From contig NC_068986.1 of NCBI RefSeq assembly GCF_001194135.2, forward strand, positions 53,865,772 through 53,929,771: a stretch of DNA of 64,000 nucleotides, given 5' to 3'. The position numbers were made by a program, and so were the translations under genes. This document shows positions 30,881-58,195 of the stretch, one piece after another (position 1 is the first letter of the stretch; each line of letters starts with the position of its first letter). The DNA is from Octopus bimaculoides (lineage: Eukaryota). The notes under the pieces were generated by a model. The model had not been told where the DNA came from, did not search any database, and worked only from the letters and a program-made list of their open reading frames with translations.

Positions 30881-33849
30881 GGTTTCAAATCTTGGCACCA
30901 GGGCAGCAACTTTTGGGGAGGGGGTTATGTCGATTACATCAACCCCAGTGCTTATTTTATTGACCCCAAAAGGATTAAAGGCAAAGTTGTCCCTGGCAAA
31001 ATTTAAAATAATAGTGATGGTAATAAACAATAATAACTGATTAGTTATTACTTGTGTGCGTATAACTGGAAAGCTGAACAACAATACTTTATTTCATCTG
31101 TTTCAGATGGATGAAAAGTAAAGTAAACTTTGGCAGGTTTTGAAATCAATGGAAAGGGCCGTAACTAAAATATTGCAGACATTTTGTTTAGCACACTAAC
31201 TATTCAGCCAGTCAACAATATCTATACCCAGCTTCCATCCAAATTTGTGGCTATGTTAGAAATTATCATCATCACTATCACTTAGCATCTGTTTTCTATG
31301 CTAGCAGGGGTTAGATGGTTTGATTAGTACTGGTAAACTGCACCAGGCTCCAGTTATCTATTTTGACTTGGTTTCTATGGCTTGCCCTTCCTAATGCCAA
31401 CCATTTTACAGAGTATACTGGGTGTATTTTACATGTCACCAGCACGGGTGCCTTTTCTGTGTCACTGGCATGGGTCCCTTTTTACATGTCCCCAGTACTG
31501 GCAATGGCCAAAATTCACTTAGCTTCACGTGTCTTCTCAAGCACAGCAAATTGCCAGAAATCTTGGTCACTTGTCATTGCCTCTGTGAGGCTCTATTTGA
31601 AGAGAAAAGGATTGTAGAGCAGAGGTTCTCAAACTAAAAAATACCAGAAACATGCTTCCTGCTAAGAGAAGTCAAAACAGTGTTGCATCCATCTAATTTT
31701 TCTTTCTTCACAATGGTGTTTGAGAAATTTAAAAAGTTCAAATCAAATTTTAAACATAGCAATTTTGTTCGCTCTTTTTTTCAATGCATTACAACTGCTT
31801 CTCCTATCAGAAACATTCTTGTAGAGAGTAAGAAGTAAAACATGTTAGGATTGATGTTCTCAGCTTGAATTTTAGAATACTAATTTTGGTATTTGCTGTA
31901 CTTAGAATGTCTGACTCATGATCAGAACATTGTAGGTTCAATTCTTGGATCAGGCAATGTACTGTGTTCTTGAGTAAGACACTTCATTTTACACTGCTCC
32001 AGGCTACTCAGATGAAGTGAGTATCAACCAGAGTGCTGGTGCAGCCCTCTAGCAGTCCTCTCTCTCTCTCTTCCCAGCTGTCACATCCAGATGTTCCCCT
32101 GGGTCAAGGATGAGGGCACCAAAAGGATGTGTTTGTCTGTTTGTGACTACAATTAGTGAAAGCATGATACATACTATGAAACTATAGATACATACTATGA
32201 TACATACTATGAAACTATAGATGCATTTAAGTCAAAGCTGGCTGTATAGTACTGATCACCTCTTTATAAGATTAGGTTACACCAAGTGGAGCTATTTGTA
32301 GACAAAAACTGAAAGATGTTGTCTCATATATCTATCTATCTGTTTCTCTCTCTCTCCTTCTCTATGTATATATATATATATTGTTATACTTGGGGATGAT
32401 CATTCTTTACCAATTAAACCAGGCATTATTTATTTCATCTTCACTTCAGTTTAATTAGTATTATAAATTTTTCTTTTAGTTTATTTATCTGTCATTTTTT
32501 TTCAGCAACCCTCTGTCCTATGTGTCGCCTCTTGTTATGTCCCATGTGTTTCCCTGTAAGTAGAGCCACATGAGACAAAGTATTGTTGAAGAGGTCACAG
32601 AATGTTCGATAAAAAGAACAAAATAAAAAAATAATACTCATAAAACTAAACTGAAGATCAAATAAATAGTACCTGTGTTTAATTGGCAAAAGATGATCCC
32701 CAAGTATAACAACAATATCTGTTTCAACACGTTTCCACATCAAGAATCTTGCAAAAGAAAAAAAAATACATGAACATATGTGTGTGTGTGTGTATCTGTC
32801 TGTCCTTGTATTGGTGTAAATGAGTGTCACTGTCGTAGAAACTGACATTCCTTTCCAAAAATCCTGTGAAAGCATGCCTGGCCATGAGAAATATTACCTT
32901 GCTTGGTTGGTGGCAGGAAGGGCATCCAATCATAGAAAATCTTTCTCAACAAACTTCCATCTGACCCATGTAAGTATGGAAAAGAGGACGTTAAAATGAT
33001 GATTATAATAAGACTACAGATACTGACATAGACTGTTATAGGAACATTATTTTTTACATTTTAAAATTTTATGTAAAGGGACATAACTAGTACCCTTCAA
33101 TGTTTGGTTACTGAGGTAAAAATAAAATAAATTAGTCAATAGAAAAAATTATATTTAAGGTTAAAACAATAGAAATTATTGCAAGAATGTTCATTATGAA
33201 AATGCTTTTGATCTTTGTATATTATAACTAAAAAATAAAATCCAACACAGAAAACGAGAGAATTTCAGCAAGGTCAATTGACTTGACAGAAGTCAAATCT
33301 CTTTCTTGCGTCAAATTAAGAGTTTAAGACTGTAATATGAAAATATGAAAGATTCTCTGTTAAGACTAACTCAGGGATTTGGTGAAAAGCTTGGCCTCAA
33401 GTAAATTCCTGAGTCACTGAAAGCAATTACATAGTTATTTTATCATTTACTTGTTTCAGTTATTAGACTGTGGCCATGCTGGGGTGCCACCCTTTAGCTG
33501 AATGAATTGACCCCAGTACTTTTTTTTTTTAAAGCCTGCTACTCATTCTATTGGTTTCTTTTACAGAGCCACTAAGTTGTGGGGTTGTAAACACACCAAC
33601 ACCGGTTATCAAGTGGTAGTGGGGAACAATCACACACACATTTATATACATGACAAGCTTCTTTCAATTTACATCTACCAAATCCAGTCACAATGCTTTG
33701 GTTGGCCTGAGGCTACAGCAAGGCACTTGCTCAAGGTGCTGTGCAGTAGGACTGAACCTGGAACCATGTGGTCGGGAAGCAAGCTTCTTAACCAACCTAT
33801 ATAGAGTTACCAAAGTTTATTGATGAGAAAAATGAGAAATGGAGAACAT

Positions 33850-36836
33850 ACGTGGACCGAATGAATCGCTGAAGAGGTCACAGATGTGTGATGAAAGATT
33901 TCCGGCAATGGACGTGAAAAACAAATATATAGTGCGTGTGTTTATTTGGCAAAAGGAAGAGAAAAAAAATATGACCATTTCGAAACATAACAATACAGAA
34001 ATGAAATAATTCCTTCAATTTTAGAAGAACGTATTTAATCACATCTGAATAGATGAGACAAATTTAGACACAAAAAAGACTCCACCCCGCTGACTGGTAA
34101 ACCCCATCACATCCCTGAAAATCTAAATTTTATCAATATATTTTTTATTCTATTTTCTCCGGAGCGTATTCTTTACAAATTGCCAAATAAAAATAATCAT
34201 TTTAAAGAGAATTATAAGGAACCGAAAGTCAGTAGATTGAGAGAATAATCCCAAACTCCTTTCCAACCAAAAAGGAAAAAAGGGCGATCTTTGCTTATCG
34301 TTATCTATACTCATGAGAATGCATCTCAGCAAAATTTTATGACAAAATATGCATTTTCAGAAAGTTATGAGGAAACAAAGTCAGTATGTACTTATGCTGG
34401 TTCGTTTCGTTTTTGTTTTCAGTAACGAATACTCCGATAATGAGCATTCTGTTATAATTTCTATTATCTTATTCCCTAAAAAATATTTACTTTTCTGTTG
34501 AATATTGTCATAAAACACACATTCTAAACGTAGGCGCAAGCATGGCTGTGTAGTTAAGAAGCTCGCTTCGCAACCACGTGATTTCGGGTTCATTGGCACA
34601 ATGAGCAAGTGTCTTCTACTACAGCCCCGGGCTGTACAATGTCTTATGAGTGAATTTGGTGAACGGAAACTGTGTGGAAGCTCGTCGTATCTGTTTATAT
34701 ATATATATATAAATAATACAGAATGGGACAAGAACACAAAACATCCAGACATGGGATGGTATGTTTGCGTTTGTCACCCACACCGCTTGACAGCCGGTGT
34801 TTTTTTTTCACGTTCCTTATAACTCAGCAGTTCAGCAAAAGTAGTCGATTTATTTGACAAACCCTTCAAGGTATAAAAGATAGCGGTGGTGCTAAGAATG
34901 TTAGTGCAATGAGTTACGTCCCTTGAAAGCCAACAGTTAAAGAAGCTGTAACTGAAAGTCGGTGACACCTCAAAAGATCCCCTAAGCAAAATAAGCTGAC
35001 CGTAGCGCAGCGTTAAAAAATTTCTTCCACAGTTGTTAAACAAATTAATGGGAAAGAAAAGAAAAGAAAAAAAAAACACGTAGTACATGTCCTGCGCTTT
35101 TATTTACAATAAGCGGTTCGGCTCGAAGATACTTTGTCGCAACACCAAGTTTCTCTTTTATACATTCGTTTAAGCAAACGATGACAAAAGCAAGAAACAT
35201 GGAATAGTGACGAAGACAATTAAATCATCATCTCCGAATGTACTAAGAGCGATCTAGGTTAATGTTTACGGGTCAAGATGTAAACATTAACCGCGATCTA
35301 TATGGCTCAACTTAGTTTTCACTTTCTATAGGGGTTTCCCATCAGTAATTTATAAGCTTTCATTTTTGCACGTTTTTCCCCCCGATCTCTACTTTTCAGT
35401 TTGTCTACAAACGTAAGTCGTCACGTATCACTGACAACTATTATTTTTGTATTTGTATATTACTAACGAATATTGAGGCAGTGATTTGGCAGAATCGTTA
35501 GCACACCTGACATACTGCTTAGAAGGCATTTCGTCCCTCTTTACGTTCTGAGTTCAAATTCCGCCGCGGTCGACTTCGCTTTTTATCCTTTCGAGGCCAA
35601 TAAAGCAAGTACCAGTGGAGCACTGAAGTCGCGACTAGTCTCTTTTCTGCCACAGTAGAAAGAACATTACTTTTACCTTTGTTTCTTCACAATTTTTAAT
35701 GAGTCCCGACGAGTAGCAAGACAATTTGAATGAAACTTATGGTAGTTGAGTACTGGCCAATTACAGTTGCTATAACATTGTGTAAAAGTCTTGGACAATT
35801 ATTACTGACCATTTTCTAGACTGAAAGGAAAGTTTAAGTTTGCGAAAAGACAAAACAGGACGTTCATATTATATTGGTTTCAAATTTTGGCGCAAAGCCA
35901 GCAATTTCGGGGGAGGGGTAAGTCGATTACATCGATCCCAGTTCTCAGCTGATACTTACCTTATTGACCCCGGTGGCATTTGAACTCAGAAAAGTAAAAA
36001 CCGGGAGAAATGCCGCTAAGCATTTTACCCGGTGCCGTAACGATTCTGCCAGCTAGTCGCATTACGTTCGTATTAGTTTCAAATTTTGGCACAATTTCAG
36101 CAAGTTCTGGGGAGGGATTAAGTCGATTACACCGACTCCAGTGATCTACTGGTACTTATTTTATCGACCGCAAAAGGGATGAAAGGCAGAATCGACCTCG
36201 GCAGAATTTGAGCTCAGAAAATAAGGACGGACGAAATGCCGTTGTGTATTTTGCCGGCGTGCTAACGATTCTGCCAGCTCGCTGCCTTTTTTTTTTTTGT
36301 ATTATATTGAGTACTCTTTCATTTCTGCGTGTGTTTATATATATAGGCAGACGATGCTGACGAAAATGCAGACACGAACGTCCAAACATTCTAATCTACA
36401 GTCTTCTTAAGGAGACTGTAGATTAGAACGTTAACAAGAGTTAGCAAAAGACAGAAAAATTTTTTTTTTCATTATATCATTAAAAAGGACTGTCGTTTTG
36501 CCTAAGACGAAGTGTTGACGTTTGGATTCGATAGTGTCGTGTTGCAGGTATTAACATCACTTCATTCTTTAGTTACTTTTTTTAACAGCAGTTCTGTATT
36601 GTCGAATGGCAAAAAGCAACTGATGTTTATTTTCTGTTAACACACAGAGAGTATATCTTGCGTGTACATGCAGATGACTGCTACTGTTGAATTTAGAGCT
36701 TAACGTAGATGATAAGTTGTGGTTAAGCATCCAAATGCAGTTAGATCCAATACAGAGTTAGGAACTTCAGTGGCAAAACGTGCAAAGAACAAATGATATA
36801 AACTTGTATTTATCGTAATTTCTTTCCCCACCTCCG

Positions 36837-36906
<70 letters not shown>

Positions 36907-37500
36907 ATTAGAGAGAGAGATTATATTATTAAGAAGTAAGCAAAGTGAATATAATAGTTTTTATGTGTTCTTGAATGGCTAACATGACTCTTCTACGATA
37001 CAATTATTTCAATCACAAACACTATCACACACATCAAGTCATTTGCCAAACAATCGCAACCCCGAAATATTGCAATTGACAGATGGGAACCTTATCTTGT
37101 TTTTAACAAAGGGAGACGATCAGCATCAAGTAATTACCACAACCGTTATATCTATGCTTATAACATAAGTGCGAGAAATCGGCAACCATAAACGATAATA
37201 AAATATTCGAATGAAAGTAAACTGAATTCATATACATGTGTCAAACAAAAGGAATGAACAATTGAGATAATATGAATACAAACCTCAAAATAAACAACAG
37301 GAAATAAGACGGTGAAGAATATCAAAATATTCAGTAGTGTGCTACACTCCAAACAGTTTAGTGGTCAATATTTTTTACAGGTCTTGAACTGAACCAAGCG
37401 AAATATCAGTCTCTCTATCTCGCCTCATCAGGTTTAAAAAAAAACAGGTAAATATTGCTCGTGAATAAATGGCTTTTAGAATCGATTGTGCATTTTAAAA
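33850..37500. promoter_or_regulatory. CpG-retaining promoter-like zone with candidate divergent first exons
   Basis: CG dinucleotides are visibly frequent compared with the CpG-poor flanks. Minus-strand donor CAC|GTATGT at 33852/33851, CCGGAAAT (ETS-like) at about 33897-33904 on the minus strand, and plus-strand donor CAG|GTAAAT at 37447/37448. Confidence 0.35.
35257..35292. mobile_element. 36-bp micro-MITE (13-bp TIR, 8-bp TSD)
   Basis: GCGATCTA-[GGTTAATGTTTAC gggtcaagat GTAAACATTAACC]-GCGATCTA. Confidence 0.75.
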
Positions 37501-46199: not shown

Positions 46200-47100
46200 G
46201 AAATGTGAAAAATGATTGATGACCTTATGATCTGTATTATATATTTTGGCTTCACTATCAGTCACGCAAATATACGGTAACTGAAACCAAAGATCGCTTA
46301 TTTTTTAATATTAGAATGCACTAAATGCAGTAGGGTACAGAGTACTCAAATATATTTAATTGCCAGTTTACCAGTATATGGAGTTCGGCGGCTTAATGAA
46401 TTAAGAACGAAAGTAGAGTATTATAATGAACATACTTTGAATACTGAATATTTTATGACTATAATACTTACAGATGATGTAAAGGAAAATCGGCTGATAA
46501 ATCGCCCTGTTCGAGCAATCACAGAGAAGTTTTAGTGATGTGGTGTTTTTATTTAGTTTTGTGTTCCTGATTTTTCGGTATATCTGTACACAGTTCTATG
46601 TAAGTACTACACTAATTATACGAATGAAACCATCATTTCATGATTTGCGAGCTAATGAAGCACTCGAAACTCGCACTAAATTTTGCTCGTGACCGAATGT
46701 ATACAAATAAAGAACATAAACAAAACCTCATCATCTTGAGCTTTCTGTCAGTCAATTTTGGCGCCAGTATCCATAGCAACAACCATAGATTCGTATTAAA
46801 AAAATGTGATTTAAAAAAAAGTTAATTTTCTATATTTTCGAGAGAAATGAAAAAATATCTCGTAGTAATTTAGAAATATTTAGGATATTATGTAATTTTT
46901 ATGTTGTAAAATATTCCTAAGGCTAAGTCAATAACAATGTATTCGAAAAGTTGCTAAGAATAAATAGAATATGTCTCCAATGCTACTGAACGATACTATT
47001 TGTGATGTCTTCGAAGGTAAGAATAAGCCAAAAAACACAACTCGTTCTCTTTATTTGTTTGCTCAGACAGACTTCGTGTTAGGACAACAAATCAAACAAA
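46200..47100. promoter_or_regulatory. CpG-rich, probably bidirectional promoter with E2F-like and RFX X-box motifs
   Basis: TTTTGGCGCC at 46756-46765 and GTATCCATAGCAAC at 46767-46780. Donor GAAG|GTAAGA at 47016/47017 (+) and TCT|GTAAGT at 46472/46471 (-). Confidence 0.45.
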
Positions 47101-47225
47101 ACTGTTTTAACAGTTAGATATTCCTCTTTATCTTTTCATTGATATTCGCTTCTCAGTAGACATTCACCCTGGTCCTTGTTGTTGTTGTTGTGTAGTCCCT
47201 ATCACCCTTGTCAAACAGCTAACTA

Positions 47226-49241
47226 TCGTATTTACTAATGTATAATGCGAGAAATTTACTATGAGAAAATATCAGGGTCAAAATTAGGTGGGTAGCATTA
47301 TACTCGAGTGTTAGAAATATGTATAAACGTAAAAACAAACGTGAAATTTGAAAGTCGTATTCCTGAGACGTCGAACGATATATACACACACACGCTTAAT
47401 TGTGGCTATGAAACATCGTATGTGTAGTGAATACATTCCAGTGGCAGTTATTAATTCAGTGAGCACACTGGTGATGTGTTGTTTACAATCTGTCAAAAAG
47501 TGATGATTCAATTAAAAAGCTTACTGTTCAGAACTTGAAAGTTATATTACTGACATACGTTGGTAATTTTAAAAACAATTTCCATTCTACAGCCTTATGA
47601 TTAAAAGTATGGATTCCAAAAAAAGACGTATTGCTTACAGTGCAGAATTCAAACTCACTGCCATAGAATTTGCTGAAAAGAATACCAACCGTGCAGCCTC
47701 TAGAAAATTCGGTGTTGTTGAGAGCAACATTAGGCTATGGAGAAAGGAAAAAGCTCAACTGCAGAAAATGCCAAGTTGTAAACAATCTCTAAGAGGAAAA
47801 CAGGCTCACTATCCAGAACTGGAAAAAGAATTAGCTGAATGGGTGGAAAACAAAAGAAAAAATGGATATATTGTAACAACACTGCATGTAAAGTTACAAG
47901 CAAAGAAAATGTCGCAAGATGAGAAATATGGAGTTTGTCAATCTTTCAAATTTTCAAATGGCTGGTGCCAGAGATTCTTCTCAAGATATTCTTTAGCTCT
48001 ACGCCAGAAAACAAAAAATTCACAGAAGCTTCCTACTGATTTGGATGAAAAAATTGTGCAGTTTTATAGTTTTATAATAGAATTGAGAAATCAGCATGAC
48101 TTTGATCTGAGTCAAATTGGGAACATGGATGAGATACCTTTGATTTTTGACATGTCAGGGACCAGAACACTGGGAAGTAAAAATATCTATGTGAGAACAG
48201 CAGAACATGAAAAAAATCATTGTACTGTAGTTATGTGTTGTCTAGCTGATGGAACCAAACTAAATCCCATGGTTATTTTTAAAAGAAAGACAATTCCAAA
48301 AAGTGTAATATTTTCTTCTGGAGTTATTGTTCACTGTCACCCTAAAGGCTTGATGGATAGAGAAGGGATAGATGTATGGCTGAGAAAAGTTTGGAATAAA
48401 CGACCTGGAGCACATTTAAACAAACCTGCAATGTTGGTGTGGGACAAGTTTAGAGCTCATCTTACCGAGCCAGTGAAACACATATTGAAAGATATGAAAA
48501 CATATCAAGCTGTTATCCCAGATGGTTTGTCAAGTATTCTTCAGCCCCTTGATGTTGTTTTGAAGAAACCATTTAAAAATGAAGTTAGAAAGCACTGGAT
48601 GTCCTGGATATCATCTGATGAAATGGGAAATACAACAGGTGATAATCTCAAAGAGCCTGACCTTGCTACTATTGTTACTTGGGTTAAAATAGCTTGGAAT
48701 TCTTTACCTGAACATATGGTTTCCAAGAGCTTTTTAAAAACTGGCATCAGTAATAAACTGGATGGAACGGAAGATTACCTGCTATGGAATTGCCAAGATG
48801 CAACTTTAGGCACCTCTACAAGTTTAGATGAAGAAGATGATGAAATGATAGGACAGGACTCTGATGAAAAGTTAAATGAAGAATGTTTGCTGTTAGTTGA
48901 AGAATCAGATGATGAATCAAACTTTGATGATTTTTAATTGATAAGCTCATTATATATATGATAACCTTTTCTTTAAACTTAAGCTACAACCTTCACTCAG
49001 TAGCTTTTAAGCAATTTTTACTGAGCAAAAACAGGAACCATGCTAGATCTTATTTTAATTTTTCTGTTTTATGTGTTTTAACATTTGCAGTGAAAATATA
49101 TTGGTTTCTTAAAAAGTCTAAATAACTATGGTTGTACTTGAGGTTCACATTATAAAGAGCAAAAATATACTACTGATTGTCACCTACACAAAGTTGGGGT
49201 TGCATTATATTCAGGATCACATTTTACTTGTGTGAATATAA
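47226..49241 (+). mobile_element. pogo (Passer-like) DNA transposon, about 2.0 kb, with decayed TIRs
   Basis: TA|TCGTATTTACTAATGTATAATGCG versus CACATTTTACTTGTGTGAATATAA|TA: 16 of 24 TIR positions match, and TA flanks both ends. Confidence 0.75.
47597..48937 (+). CDS. POGK-like pogo transposase (Brinker-type DBD, CENP-B HTH, DDE_1 DD35D), 446 aa
   Basis: AYSAEFKL..AASRKFGV..NIRLWRK; HYPELEKELAEWV..FKFSNGWCQRF; catalytic NMDEIP, VWDKFRAH and QPLDV with 35 residues between D2 and D3; acidic tail. Uninterrupted ORF with acceptor ttccattctacAG at 47591-47592 just before the ATG. Confidence 0.9.
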   Translation: MIKSMDSKKRRIAYSAEFKLTAIEFAEKNTNRAASRKFGVVESNIRLWRKEKAQLQKMPSCKQSLRGKQAHYPELEKELAEWVENKRKNGYIVTTLHVKLQAKKMSQDEKYGVCQSFKFSNGWCQRFFSRYSLALRQKTKNSQKLPTDLDEKIVQFYSFIIELRNQHDFDLSQIGNMDEIPLIFDMSGTRTLGSKNIYVRTAEHEKNHCTVVMCCLADGTKLNPMVIFKRKTIPKSVIFSSGVIVHCHPKGLMDREGIDVWLRKVWNKRPGAHLNKPAMLVWDKFRAHLTEPVKHILKDMKTYQAVIPDGLSSILQPLDVVLKKPFKNEVRKHWMSWISSDEMGNTTGDNLKEPDLATIVTWVKIAWNSLPEHMVSKSFLKTGISNKLDGTEDYLLWNCQDATLGTSTSLDEEDDEMIGQDSDEKLNEECLLLVEESDDESNFDDF

Positions 49242-51002
49242 TAGATGTGATCTATAGATCCAGCATTCCAGATATACCAAGCTTTGGTGAATGGAAATCA
49301 AGTCACAAGAAAAACAGGCCACAATTTTGGCTTTTCTTGTTTCTCTTGGAAAGAGAGTCACAGGGTAGAATATCACTATCATATAAATAAGACAAATAAT
49401 AGTTAACGTAATTAAATGACTAATAAGTTTATTAACTGGCAATACATGAGTTGAATGCCTCTGTTATTGTATTAATAAAAAGTTGTGCAGTCTAAAATGA
49501 ATTATATTTCCAGACTAATTACTAAAATACTATTCAAAGACAAAAACAAAAAAAAAACCCTTAAAAATACTTGTATAAAAGGGATAAAAAAAAGACTCGA
49601 GGAAAAAACAAACTCCACATCTTCTGTTGAAGAACTTATCTCAGACACGCTCTGTAGACCGGATGGCAAAAGCATTGCTGTGAAGAACAGCCAGCAATAT
49701 CTAACGCATCAGCTATTCTACCTCACAGGGCTCCTTCTACAAGTGTGACACCCTAGTCCTGATCTGACAGAAGAAAGCAGCAGTCCGCTTGATGAGGACA
49801 CTGGAGATCTCAACAGCAATTGTCATGGAAAGGAGTACTTTTTTTTAATGACTGGTATTTATTCATCTTCTGCTTCTCTGCATTGCTGGTGGCATCTATC
49901 GAGTTTATTACCATGCTGTCAAGGTTGGCATCGTAGAATATGTTACAACATGTGGCATGCCAGATGAATGACTTGCTTCCTTGAATTGGAAAAAGCCTTA
50001 AATGTATGTGAAAAAAAAAACATATTTTATTCAGTATCATAAATAAAACTGCAAAAAAGACAAAAATATTAAATATTTATTGAAGTTTTCCTGGATTTGT
50101 TCACACCTTGTTTGTTATCTTTTAGTTGTAGGTCAGCCGTGATTGAGCAGATCTATGATCAAAGGCATTCCAGTCATGACCATTCCAGCTTTTTAGGGGT
50201 CCTTATAACTATGTTATCTAATGTGTCTTGTCTTTTATATAAGATGGTAGGGTGTGATTATTTAAGGAGTAAGTTGGGCAGCAATTTCAATCTGGTTGAC
50301 TGTTTTTGTTTGGCCGGCCATGTTCAGCTCTAAGAAGTAAACTTATGATTGAAGGCATTCCATCTATATTCTTGCTTATCCAGTCTTTTGATTTAACAAT
50401 CATCATCATCGTTTTAATGTCCACTTTCCTATGCTTGTATGGATCCTATAGAGTTTATTGAGGCAGATGCCCTTCCTGTTATCAACCCTCACCAATTTCC
50501 AAGTGAAGTAATTTTTCCCCATGGCTACATATGATTTTGCAAAATATTGGAAATGAATAATATTCATTTACAGTAGTGGTTCTAACCGTTTTTTTTTTTT
50601 TACATAAGGAGTCTTTTGATTACTGTTTTACTTTGGTAGACCCCTATAGCCATTCACTGTTTATAAACTAGTTTTATTTGTACTTCTTTCAAAATTCCTA
50701 TTTTGTTCATCACACATTGACTTGTGTAGGTTGTACTATGTAAAATGTTCAAGAAAGAAATCTAGCTATTTCTTGCAATAAATACATCTAAAGCAAAATT
50801 CTTTTTATGGATCCTTGATATACTACTGTAGATTCTCAGTTTACTATTTTGCTTGCCTGGATCTCCAAAAACCTTACTTGAACCCCAGTTGAGAACCATT
50901 GATTTGTAACAATCACTCAATGTTGAGACAAGGAGACACAAACATATGCATACACACACGTGTGTGTGTATATATATATATATATATACTAGCAGAAATA
51001 TA

Positions 51003-52289
51003 TATATATACTAGCAGAAATACCCGGCTTTGCCCGGGTTAAAGAGAATAATGAAATCTAAAAACGCCGTCTAGACTACGCAACCCTCAACTGTTAGTAG
51101 CTACGATACCATATTTCTACATTAATAACTCTCCAATCCATGCCAGCGTGGAACATAGACATTAAGTGGAATGCCAGTCTCTCATCTAGGAGGGCCTTGA
51201 AATCAATGTTATCAACTGGGGACTATGTGTGTCNNNNNNNNNNNNNNNNNNNNNNNNNNNNNNNNNNNNNNNNNNNNNNNNNNNNNNNNNNNNNNNNNNN
51301 NNNNNNNNNNNNNNNNNNNNNNNNNNNNNNNNNNNNNNNNNNNNNNNNNNNNNNNNNNNNNNNNNNNNNNNNNNNNNNNNNNNNNNNNNNNNNNNNNNNN
51401 NNNNNNNNNNNNNNNNNNNNNNNNNNNNNNNNNNNNNNNNNNNNNNNNNNNNNNNNNNNNNNNNNNNNNNNNNNNNNNNNNNNNNNNNNNNNNNNNNNNN
51501 NNNNNNNNNNNNNNNNNNNNNNNNNNNNNNNNNNNNNNNNNNNNNNNNNNNNNNNNNNNNNNNNNNNNNNNNNNNNNNNNNNNNNNNNNNNNNNNNNNNN
51601 NNNNNNNNNNNNNNNNNNNNNNNNNNNNNNNNNNNNNNNNNNNNNNNNNNNNNNNNNNNNNNNNNNNNNNNNNNNNNNNNNNNNNNNNNNNNNNNNNNNN
51701 NNNNNNNNNNNNNNNNNNNNNNNNNNNNNNNNNNNNNNNNNNNNNNNNNNNNNNNNNNNNNNNNNNNNNNNNNNNNNNNNNNNNNNNNNNNNNNNNNNNN
51801 NNNNNNNNNNNNNNNNNNNNNNNNNNNNNNNNNNNNNNNNNNNNNNNNNNNNNNNNNNNNNNNNNNNNNNNNNNNNNNNNNNNNNNNNNNNNNNNNNNNN
51901 NNNNNNNNNNNNNNNNNNNNNNNNNNNNNNNNNNNNNNNNNNNNNNNNNNNNNNNNNNNNNNTCTCTCTCTCTCTCTGAAAGTATCTGTCATTACAGTAT
52001 CGAAATGTGATTGTTTCAGTTAGTAGAATAGTTTCATTTTTAAAGTGAAAGTATTTGACATGAGTGTTTTTGTTTCACTTTTGACACGTAATACTTAAAT
52101 AGTGGAGGAGGTATTATGTTGCTGTGGGCTCGAACTCTGCAAGAAGTTAAAATTTTTTTTGACTAAAACACAACTGGAACCCTAAGTAAGGCATCTGTAA
52201 AATTTGAATGAAATTGGTTGCGTAGTTCTCGAGTTTTAGGGATTCACACAGACAGACAGACACACATTCTCATTTTTATATATATAGAT
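51003..52289 (+). mobile_element. Helentron/DINE-1-like non-autonomous element (interior mostly gap)
   Basis: 5' TATATACTAG...ACCCGGCTTTGCCCGGGT hairpin; 3' (CAGA)n...CTCATTTTTATATATATAGAT. Confidence 0.55.
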
Positions 52290-55559: not shown

Positions 55560-57000
55560 TGGGTCCTAAGGTAAACTTAGTGAAGACCAAAGTCCTAGTA
55601 AGCAAGAAGTCGGACAGGACAGGACCCTTCATTTGTCAGGTAAATGGTCCTTGGTGTAGGTAGATATTCCATTTGGTGTAACTAGTGCAAGCTGTGGATA
55701 CACAAGTGGAATAGTTGGAAGATTAACAGAAAAAGTAGAGTTCACATGTAGATGTACAGGAGCCATAAAGACCGCAGATACACAGAATACTGATTTCCTT
55801 AAATGTCTTAATGGCTCTCTGGAAGTTGTAGATGATTTTTTGCTACCTAGGTGACCTAATAAGTAGTAGAGGAGGTTGTACAGAAAGTGTAATTGCTAGA
55901 ATAAAAATATGATGGAGAGGGTTCAGAGAACTTCTGCATCTGTTGGCAACCAAAGGTCTCTCTTGCTGAGTGAAGAGAAGATTGGTGCATGTGTACAAAC
56001 TGATGCTGTATGATAGTGAGACATGGAACCTGAATGTGGAGAAGCAAAAAAAGCTGGTATGCTCTGCTGGGTGCGAGGTGTCAGTGTGCATGTGTGACAG
56101 AGCACTGGTGTATTGAGGGAGAAGTTAGGCATAAGAGGAATTATTTGCAGTGTACAAGACTAGAGACTGTGCTGGTTCAGTCATGTGATGTGGATGGATG
56201 AAGACAGTTGCATAAAGAAGTGCCAATCACTTAAAATGGAAGTGAAGTTACAGAAGAGAAAGACCCAAGAAGACATGTGACAAAGTATTGAAAGCTGATC
56301 TCAAAATGCTGAGCGTCACAAAGGTGATGACAGGACTGAGATATGTGGTACATTGCTGAACTTGAGAAGACCTGCCCACTACAACAGAATTGAGATCCTA
56401 AAACCAAGGTGCCACATAAAAAGTTGATGTGGGTACTAGTGTCACATAAAAAGCTCTGATGCTAGTGCCACTTAAAAAGCACAGTTGATGGTGCCACATA
56501 AAAAGCACCCAGTACACTGTGGAGAGGCTGACATTAGGAAGGGCATCCAGCTGTAGAAACCAAGCCAAAACAGACTATAGAACCTGGTGTGTCCCCTGGT
56601 CGACACTCATCTAGTTCCAAGCAAGGCATTTTTTCCAATGAGCAGACATACTTTCATTGAAAATTGGAAATGAAGGGTGCTACTTGTATAACAGTGACAC
56701 TTACAGTTATCATAGTCTGTCAAGATAAGGAAAACAAACAAACACGCACACACATTTGTATATACAGATACAATAGGTTTCTGGCTACAAAAGCTATTCA
56801 CAAGGTCTTGGTTGGTTTGAAGCTGTAGTAGAAGATACTTGCTCCAGGTGTTTAGCATTAGGAAAGGCATCCAACTGTAGAAACCACTCCAAAGTAGTTG
56901 TAGGAACACAATGACGTTCTTGCCCCATTGGATCTTGAAAAAACCATCCAACCTATGCCAGCATGGAAGATGGATGTTACATAGTGATGATGATGATATA
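55560..57000 (+). mobile_element. RTE-clade LINE 3' fragment
   Basis: KVNLVKTKVLVS, YLGDLISSRGGCTESVIARI, GFRELLHLLATKGLS and MLYDSETW, with a (GAT)n tail. Shorter pieces lie at about 57715-58170, 61620-62040 and 62460-62700. Confidence 0.8.
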
Positions 57001-58195
57001 TTTTATTAGTTAGATCTGGATGAAGGTATATTGGTCCTTGGTCAATCACACTTGCCTTCAAGACTGTTGAGATTGATGCTGTTAATATTTTGCTTAAATC
57101 ATTACTAGTTGATGACTGGAGGTAAGATGTACAGAGGTGGGAGTGATTTCCAAAGGACTGACATTCTAGGGTGGAAGGACTAGGTGTAGGGGTTAGTACA
57201 GGGATTTGGTGAAGGTGTTAAACACAGAGTATTACAAAAAAGGGGAAATGAGTGAGTTGAGAATGAAGGTGAACATGAGACCAGATAGCTTTAAAAAAGT
57301 GAGGCTGTTGAAAAAAAAAAAAAATGAAATGGAATAGGTATGGTTAGAATGCTTTAGATCATAGATCTCTTTGTTAGTGATTATCCTGGGGCTAAACAGC
57401 CAGAACAGTTTAAAATTATTTAAAAAATATATACTTATATTTAAAACAGATCAATGCAAAACAAACTCTAATGAAAATAATTTGAACCTGACTTTTATAA
57501 TTTTCCTAAACTTGGAATGAAGAAACAAAATGAAATTTAATAGAAACAAAGGCATGAAAATAGAGAACAAAAACCCAACAATTTTTTTTATTCAATTCCA
57601 AAAATGTAATCATGTAACTAGTTATTTATAAGAAGCAAATTTGATTTTTGCAACTTTTTTTCACATTGGTAAAATATAAATCATGAATTTGTATCCCTTT
57701 CAATTTTGTTTGGAAGGCATGTGTGTGTGTGATGCATGTGGATGAGGACAGTTGTATAAAGAGGTGCTGATCTCTAACTGTGGAGGGAACTTGTGGAAGA
57801 GGTAGACCCAAGATGATGTAGGAGGAGCTGGTGGAATATGGTCTTCAGATGTTGAGTCTCATGGAGGCAATGACAAATGATTAAAATTGTTGGTGATTTG
57901 CTGTGCTTGAAAAGGCATGTTAAGTTTAGTGAAATTATAGTTGTAGCCAGTTCCACTGACACACAAATGGTGTCTGTGCTGGTGACACATAAAAGCACCC
58001 ATGCTAGTAATACATTGAAAACACCTAGTATACTCTGTAGAGTGGTTGGCATTAAGAAGGGCATCCAGCCATAGAAACCATACCAAAACAAACTGAAGCC
58101 TGGTGCAGCTCCAGTCAAACCATCTAACTTATGCCAGTATGGAAAATGGACAGTAAGTGATGATGATGATATATATATATGTGTGTGTGTATGTG

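Follow-up and report, generated by a model that had tools for sequence, protein, structure and literature searches.

A 446-codon open reading frame (ORF) in the genome of Octopus bimaculoides is probably a domesticated Passer transposase gene of octopods. It lies on the plus strand of a 64,000-nt window (GCF_001194135.2, NC_068986.1:53,865,772-53,929,771, forward strand; all positions given here are counted within this window), inside the remnant of a 2020-bp transposon that spans 47224-49243 and has a TA at either end. We propose that a Passer-family pogo transposon inserted at a TA before the Argonauta/Octopus split and became fixed, that its ends and non-coding parts then decayed until it could no longer be mobilised, and that its transposase ORF has been retained through host-level purifying selection as a domesticated gene. 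Orthology and selection results cover two octopods, with one locus each: the window locus of O. bimaculoides and one locus of Argonauta hians (L001).

Passer transposons are characterised by a DD35D catalytic triad, the DNA-binding domains BrkDBD and HTH_Tnp_Tc5, TA duplications, terminal inverted repeats (TIRs) of <30 bp, an element length of 1.6-4.0 kb and a transposase of 400-500 aa (PMC7386202, PMC9976928). The window element agrees with this description in its triad, DNA-binding architecture, TA, TIR length (~26 nt, degenerate), element size and protein size. The original prediction of an uninterrupted 446-codon frame (47597..48937) encoding a complete triad (D178, D283 and D319, the last two 35 residues apart) was reproduced, and its assignment to a Passer/POGK-like class holds since domains, triad and sizes fit Passer. 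Matches to BrkDBD, HTH_Tnp_Tc5 and DDE_1 all exceed the Pfam gathering score (Table 1), the C-terminal tail is acidic and disordered, and neither a KRAB nor a zinc-finger domain was found in the protein by Pfam. The protein is 45-64% identical to many transposable element (TE)-type proteins of the same architecture. Unlike these, the window copy appears to be a non-functioning transposon, with TIRs mismatched at 8 of 24 positions and without known near-identical copies; it occupies a fixed, orthologous site in two lineages of octopods, and residues invariant in transposases have been replaced. In a phylogenetic tree without named Passer, Tigger and pogoR references, the window protein clusters with proteins that share its architecture, some of them POGK-like turtle proteins with a KRAB domain (48-50% identical). 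Within this set it nests among TE-type proteins, and the KRAB-containing turtle proteins P0060 and P0036 are not its sister group.

Judged from the two loci, a single insertion has been inherited by the Octopus and Argonauta lineages, because collinear flanks, the same junction, an exclusive pairing of the proteins and shared derived residues all coincide. Positions 8918-11145 of the Argonauta locus align collinearly with window 46716-48921 across the junction of left flank and TIR, and the alignment extends ~500 bp past the left TIR, outside the element, where the local score of the flank reaches z=33 against shuffles. This outside left flank is 64.8% identical between the species, compared to 45% (standard deviation 2.4) for shuffled controls of the same composition. 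Beyond the right end, a conserved non-coding block (49732-50101) shows 60.8% identity versus 44% in shuffles; tblastx detected no coding signal in it and all of its 8 indels are out of frame, and it may represent a distal 3' untranslated region (UTR) or a regulatory element. The neutral parts overall are 47.5-57% identical against a background of 45%: the non-coding parts of the element are near saturation (54-57%), and neither the flank 49244-49731 (47.5%) nor the 3' non-coding part of the element can be distinguished from saturated sequence. At the protein level, a word-indexed search and an exhaustive search of 1.84 billion representatives identified A. hians GAB1607331.1 (P0008, 384 aa, 62-63% identical) as the closest protein apart from the TE-type protein P0001, the exhaustive search returning nothing nearer than P0008. 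Exact look-ups gave no entry identical to the window protein. The window protein and P0008 form an exclusive pair in 200 of 200 bootstraps and share the derived states A119F, T312S and D394Y at family-conserved positions. A syntenic orthologue, which had been suggested as a check on domestication, is thus present in GAB1607331.1, with the same flank-TIR junction and conserved DNA beyond both ends.

Fossils give the Argonauta-Octopus split a minimum age of ~29 Ma, and this split is younger than the one between Vampyromorpha and Octopoda, for which the fossil minimum is 162 Ma (PMC12682272). A deep split is also indicated by the synonymous distance of 0.9 reported below. In A. hians, repeats had been masked before the gene model was called (PMC12682272), which we count in favour of a host gene. 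The Argonauta protein carries the name of O. sinensis LOC115219962, an identifier that is not mentioned in the literature searched.

The ORF has evolved under purifying selection. Between O. bimaculoides and A. hians, nonsynonymous divergence (dN) is 0.23 and synonymous divergence (dS) 0.90, yielding an omega (dN/dS) of 0.25 with a 95% interval of 0.18-0.35 (Nei-Gojobori on two sequences, interval from a codon bootstrap); this further suggested check therefore gave a value well below 1. Identity at codon positions 1, 2 and 3 is 0.73, 0.84 and 0.63, and the four indels in the ORF alignment are all multiples of three, as opposed to the flanks, which accumulated 8 gap events per ~360-490 aligned nt with 3-8 of the 8 in each segment not being multiples of three. 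Simulated neutral ORFs of 446 codons and the same composition stayed open with a probability of 3e-4 at 0.1 substitutions per site, and none of 20,000 did so at 0.2 or more. Survival of the ORF is incompatible with neutrality. With P0001 as outgroup, dN amounts to 0.044 on the window branch and to 0.183 on the Argonauta branch, both well under a plausible share of dS. A corresponding partition of dS with the TE outgroup was discarded because saturation gave a negative branch, and only the dN partition was used. Since both copies sit at one fixed locus, we attribute the constraint to selection at the level of the host and not to selection for transposition. Omega is lowest in HTH_Tnp_Tc5 (0.15), followed by DDE_1 (0.26), the linker 137-206 (0.28) and the C-terminus (0.36).

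The element ends are real, as the sequences ending at 47224 and 49243 share homology with both termini of an intact relative (L002). The TIRs of L002 are complementary at 26 of 27 positions (TACCGTATTTATTCGTGTATAATGCGA), and this locus encodes P0001, a protein from a 29-member cluster that is 64% identical to the window protein. The left 90 nt of L002 and window 47224-47313 share 75.6% identity (E=5e-8) with a local score of 59, whereas 300 shuffles reached 29 at most (0/300 attain it). The right-terminal 48 nt of L002 match window 49196-49243 at 33 of 48 positions without gaps and end exactly at the terminal TA, a score attained by 1 of 300 shuffles. Within the element, left and right TIR match at 17 of 24 positions including the TA and at 16 of 24 excluding it, so that the 8 mismatches initially counted are recovered when the flanking TA is left out. 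The predicted change from TACG to TATA in the right TIR, with the left TIR keeping its CpGs, is visible in the aligned ends: AATATAATA on the right corresponds to AATACGATA on the left, and each CpG of the L002 relative is now TpG, CpA or TpA at the right end, while the left end retains CpGs. Taken by itself, the TIR pair was rejected as evidence because 33 pairs with at least 16 of 24 matches occur between the non-coding arms versus 31 expected from shuffles, and it was not among the top pairs in a blind scan. A TA dinucleotide alone is likewise weak evidence for a target site. In L002 itself, an insert in the region 4622-5060 lies between the BrkDBD-coding start (small ORF 4622-4777) and the main ORF (5001-6320). 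This insert is flanked by a perfect 16-nt inverted repeat (4701-4716/5044-5059) and looks like a nested insertion of the miniature inverted-repeat transposable element type; because this insert splits its ORF, the L002 copy is itself disabled despite intact TIRs.

The base composition around the left end may explain how the gene could be transcribed. The median observed/expected (o/e) ratio of CpG in the window is 0.24, and only two patches in the 64 kb are not depleted, at 33.8-37.0 kb and at 46.2-47.6 kb. The latter has a ratio of ~1 (22 CpGs versus 7.2 expected, P=8e-6) and spans the conserved upstream flank (46716-47016, o/e 1.2), the left TIR and the former 5' UTR. The ratio is 0.19 in the ORF and 0.0 in the 3' part of the element, and the arrangement in Argonauta is alike. 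CpG depletion is a mark of germline methylation, and methylation in invertebrates is found mostly in the bodies of transcribed genes, with promoters left free. We therefore infer that the patch and the ORF represent an unmethylated promoter region and a methylated gene body, respectively, and expression would start from this flanking, germline-unmethylated promoter-like patch ~0.3-0.9 kb upstream of the ATG. The position of the left TIR within the patch accounts for the fact that it alone kept its CpGs. The other undepleted patch (~33800-37000, o/e 1.1-1.3) could belong to the minus-strand zinc-finger gene, or to some other gene, as its promoter.

The transcript may begin with a short non-coding exon that is joined to the ORF-containing exon by splicing from 47016 to 47593, across the left TIR. 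As originally predicted, the candidate donor at 47016 lies outside the element, 208 nt from the left TIR, the acceptor AG (47591-47592) is found 4 nt ahead of the ATG, and the first AATAAA after the stop, at 49474, is located outside the right end. The donor is kept in Argonauta (CTAAG/GTAAAG). The putative intron includes the left element end and the former 5' non-coding region of the element and has a CpG o/e of 0.9. An upstream ATG at 46971, absent in Argonauta, was rejected as the start of an N-terminal extension: when spliced to 47593 it stops after 17 codons, giving the upstream ORF (uORF) MSPMLLNDTICDVFEAL followed by a stop. Because this ATG yields only the 17-codon uORF, exon 1 would lack coding sequence, with translation of the protein beginning at 47597 or at Met5. 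With the putative splice, the TGA of the uORF overlaps the main ATG (ATGA, window 47593-47600), possibly a feature of translational control. The most conserved non-coding block of the flank, a candidate cis-regulatory sequence, contains the X-box-like motif GTATCCATAGCAAC, which is the sole match in the window and in the Argonauta locus, at orthologous positions, and fits the RFX X-box consensus GTHNYYATRRNAAC. With 0.59 matches expected per window, the motif is not significant; we rejected it as evidence and regard it as a lead only.

Regarding function, a DNA-binding or chromatin-associated factor that acts through its CENP-B-type helix-turn-helix (HTH) domain HTH_Tnp_Tc5 in a sequence-specific manner is most likely on the basis of the sequence comparisons. 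This idea gains some support from the lowest omega being that of HTH_Tnp_Tc5 while motifs of the catalytic core drift. Conserved columns were defined by identity in at least 90% of 33 TE-type family members (128 columns); the window protein deviates at 12 of them and family members at 1-12 (median ~5, one outlier with 21). Comparison to the 33 members confirmed the drifted motifs GLMD (W252L) and PDG (G309D) listed by the original prediction. At T180, W252 (GWMD), G309 (PGG) and G349, each of the two lineages carries its own, different substitution. T202/G203 of the TTGHEK motif changed to A and E in the window protein and are deleted in Argonauta, where the 5-residue deletion falls in a low-confidence loop of the structure model (residues 200-204) next to strand 2. 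Such drift would be expected if the element's immobilisation had freed from constraint those sites that serve transposition alone. The psq/Brk HTH would add DNA binding in the octopodid lineage, the RNase-H-like domain could act as a scaffold or mediate interactions, and the protein would have kept its acidic tail. The N-terminus of an AlphaFold model of the window protein (mean pLDDT 77, residues 398-446 disordered) superposes on the CENP-B(1-129)-DNA complex 1HLV in a Foldseek search (25% identity, target-normalised TM 0.55); a sequence search of the PDB with the window protein gave 0 matches.

Alternatively, the transposase might have been domesticated as an enzyme, a DDD nuclease or recombinase with which the host processes other DNA targets, as is the case for other nucleases of transposase origin. 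We consider this unlikely, but it ranks as the principal alternative within domestication. Both lineages kept the triad and its 35-residue spacing despite a dS of ~0.9, and omega of DDE_1 is as low as 0.26. The RNase-H-like core is modelled with confidence, and its three aspartates occupy canonical positions: D178 is predicted on strand 1 (174-184), D283 at the end of strand 4 (278-283) and D319 at the start of helix 317-339. Foldseek matched the model to full-length Mos1 and to the catalytic cores of SETMAR and Sleeping Beauty, and Mos1 and Sleeping Beauty are active. However, W252, G309, G349 and T180 were replaced independently in both lineages, T202/G203 were substituted in one and lost with the deletion by strand 2 in the other, and the HTH is more constrained than the core. 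In addition, POGZ has a DD35D triad yet does not transpose a Passer donor (PMC9976928). The original prediction of a DNA-binding factor rather than an active transposase gains some support in its first part from the constraint on HTH_Tnp_Tc5 and the drift of the core; with the triad intact in both species, any loss of catalysis would be putative. A more specific form, in which a still-catalytic DDD nuclease or recombinase is employed by the host under an RFX/X-box-type promoter and targets dispersed decayed Passer ends or other genomic sites, its triad and RNase-H fold having persisted from a time that predates the Argonauta-Octopus split, appears doubtful to an even greater degree. If true, the catalytic reading would make the protein an invertebrate domesticated cut-and-paste enzyme instead of a DNA-binding factor.

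Very improbable is the absence of a host gene, with the element and its flanks belonging to a larger repeated unit, the two copies being paralogous, or the element still being mobilisable. The sequence basis, 64 kb from O. bimaculoides and 21 kb from A. hians, leaves some room for it, and a check of macro-synteny failed, as the best Argonauta match of the zinc-finger neighbour in the window lies on a different contig. Against this, flank and element occur once each, with no second copy of either within the window or within L001. Near-identical protein copies are not known, because the best match in the protein libraries searched is 63-64% identical. Features of an active transposon are absent (TIRs matching at 16/24, closest representative protein at 63%, one copy in the 64-kb window), and ends with 8 of 24 mismatches and without right-end CpGs are too decayed for recognition. 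Furthermore, a paralogous composite would not explain purifying selection at the codon level on an immobile ORF. A neutrally decaying dead transposon whose ORF is open by chance can practically be dismissed: decayed TIRs, drifted conserved residues and the broken Argonauta N-terminus described below would suit it, but a probability of at most 3e-4 of staying open at 0.1 substitutions per site faces an observed dS of 0.9, the upper 95% bound of omega is 0.35, all ORF indels are in frame, and identity decreases from the second over the first to the third codon position.

Several observations weigh against a domesticated DNA-binding factor. Only one other species, A. hians, was compared; dS approaches saturation at ~0.9, and the omega value was obtained from two sequences with the simple Nei-Gojobori estimator. 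An O. sinensis orthologue was not among the listed protein matches, which is uninformative given the lossy word index: a query with the divergent C-terminal 147 aa returned 4 matches from unrelated lineages and missed P0008, so that we attach no weight to the lack of an O. sinensis match. The Argonauta protein deviates at 28 of 116 family-conserved columns and dN of its lineage is four times that of the window lineage; this copy may be under relaxed selection or changing function. Its N-terminal psq/Brk HTH was lost through a 15-nt deletion, an in-frame stop and a frameshift (L001 9876-10000). The 384 codons after the decayed HTH remain open, and the annotated Met corresponds to window residue 58. 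The intact triad (D178, D283, D319) in both species is awkward for a purely non-catalytic role. Finally, Argonauta does not share the acceptor AG at the corresponding position of the alignment, which is consistent with a remodelled 5' end in that species. The Argonauta orthologue represents a natural 'one-HTH' variant comparable to POGZ.

Table 1. Features of the window, with positions in the window unless marked L001 (Argonauta locus) or L002 (intact relative)
Feature	Position	Strand	Details
Conserved upstream flank, putative promoter and non-coding first exon	46716..47016	+	Outside element, ends at donor; roles inferred
Most conserved non-coding block, candidate cis-regulatory	46760..46796	+	GGCGCCAGTATCCATAGCAACAACCATAGATTCGTAT; 28/30 in best 30-column block, 34/37 by eye
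X-box-like motif GTATCCATAGCAAC	46767-46780	+	L001 counterpart 8969-8982
Donor GAAG/GTAAGA	47016/47017	+	208 nt outside left TIR
Putative intron, 576 nt, GT...AG	47017..47592	+	GTAAGA donor, ...TTTCCATTCTACAG acceptor
Left element end	47224..47251	+	TA 47224-47225 and left TIR TCGTATTTACTAATGTATAATGCGAG; homologous to L002 left terminus
Transposase-derived ORF	47597..48937	+	446 codons, no internal stop
BrkDBD/psq HTH	47624-47767	+	aa 10-57, Pfam 2.1e-9
HTH_Tnp_Tc5	47810-48004	+	aa 72-136, Pfam 4.7e-14
Triad codons D178, D283, D319	48128, 48443, 48551	+	Second and third D separated by 35 residues (DD35D)
DDE_1	48215-48733	+	aa 207-379, Pfam 1.1e-28
Right element end	49216..49243	+	CpG-decayed TIR and TA 49242-49243; homologous to L002 right terminus
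Candidate poly(A) signals	ATTAAA 49411, AATAAA 49474 (span 49411..49479)	+	First after stop, outside element
Downstream conserved non-coding block	49732..50101	+	L001 11895-12262, E=1.4e-18, 61.5% over 379 columns
Poly(A) candidates in downstream block	AATAAA 50042, ATTAAA 50068	+
Near-duplicate C2H2 zinc-finger exon-like ORFs (two)	578-970, 4395-4742	-
Low-complexity exon, 370 aa	10245-11357	-	81% identical to O. sinensis LOC115213480; 52% to A. hians 'zinc finger protein MSN2-like'
Interspersed repeat copies	2444-2623, 56517-56582, 58029-58180, 62597-62699; L001 12363-13009, 18469-18510

Some observations concern the surroundings of the gene. The A. hians MSN2-like protein that resembles the low-complexity exon is encoded on a contig other than that of the transposase orthologue, meaning either that long-range synteny is not kept or that the match is to a paralogue. 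The identities of this exon point to an octopodid distinct from O. sinensis and O. vulgaris as the source of the window. A family of short interspersed repeats, 65-87% identical, is common to the window and L001, with several copies in both orientations. Assembly gaps (N runs), the sign of a scaffolded draft assembly, are present at ~985-1335, ~16255-16840 and ~51230-51960, and the third of these lies ~2 kb downstream of the conserved block.

POGK and POGZ derive from Passer (PMC7386202, PMC9976928), and the octopod gene resembles them in its ancestral family, the retention of a whole transposase ORF, a ratio of nonsynonymous to synonymous change below 1, an immobile locus and a retained catalytic domain. 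POGZ has a DD35D and POGK a DN35D triad, and POGZ keeps only HTH_Tnp_Tc5 (PMC7386202), as does the Argonauta orthologue. In contrast to both, the octopod protein lacks a fused KRAB (POGK) or ZNF (POGZ) domain, its omega of 0.25 is higher than the reported 0.06-0.07, and remnants of its TIRs can still be recognised. Because it is without KRAB or ZNF and is not sister to the KRAB turtle proteins, we regard the octopod gene as analogous to POGK and POGZ and not as a member of either. The independent cephalopod domestication put forward in the original prediction accordingly holds as regards independence from POGK/POGZ, purifying selection and the shared site, and it is shown for two octopods and not for cephalopods overall. 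CENP-B, TIGD and JRK are also domesticated pogo transposases that act via N-terminal CENP-B-type HTH domains. The triad is unrecognisable in several of these genes (PMC7386202), whereas it is intact in the octopod protein, and they belong to other pogo families (pogoR or Tigger) with CENP-B_N rather than BrkDBD as first HTH.

The domestication of pogo transposases has been documented mainly in vertebrates, with CENP-B, TIGD, JRK, POGK and POGZ. To our knowledge, molluscs have been covered by domain-count catalogues only, without tests of orthology or selection. A catalogue from 2023 lists pogo-derived CENPB/HTH-Psq factors in O. bimaculoides as co-opted in the Octopus lineage; it is based on domain annotation, with species-specific clustering and no homologues in close neighbours, and includes no locus, synteny or selection test (PMC10027918). 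The present case differs from it in concerning a specific locus, for which purifying selection and orthology between two octopod superfamilies are shown. General principles are unchanged by the octopod locus, which adds a well-supported case of a known process, the domestication of a pogo transposase. Locus-by-locus demonstrations of transposase recruitment are rare in invertebrates, and the locus offers a concrete and datable invertebrate case in which insertion, the putative capture of a promoter and 5' exon, TIR decay and differential constraint on domains can be read in one place. It also provides a natural experiment, one lineage having both HTH motifs and the other the CENP-B-type HTH only. 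Given the abundance of transposons and lineage-specific regulators in cephalopod genomes, a conserved transposase-derived factor would be a reasonable candidate for functional studies.

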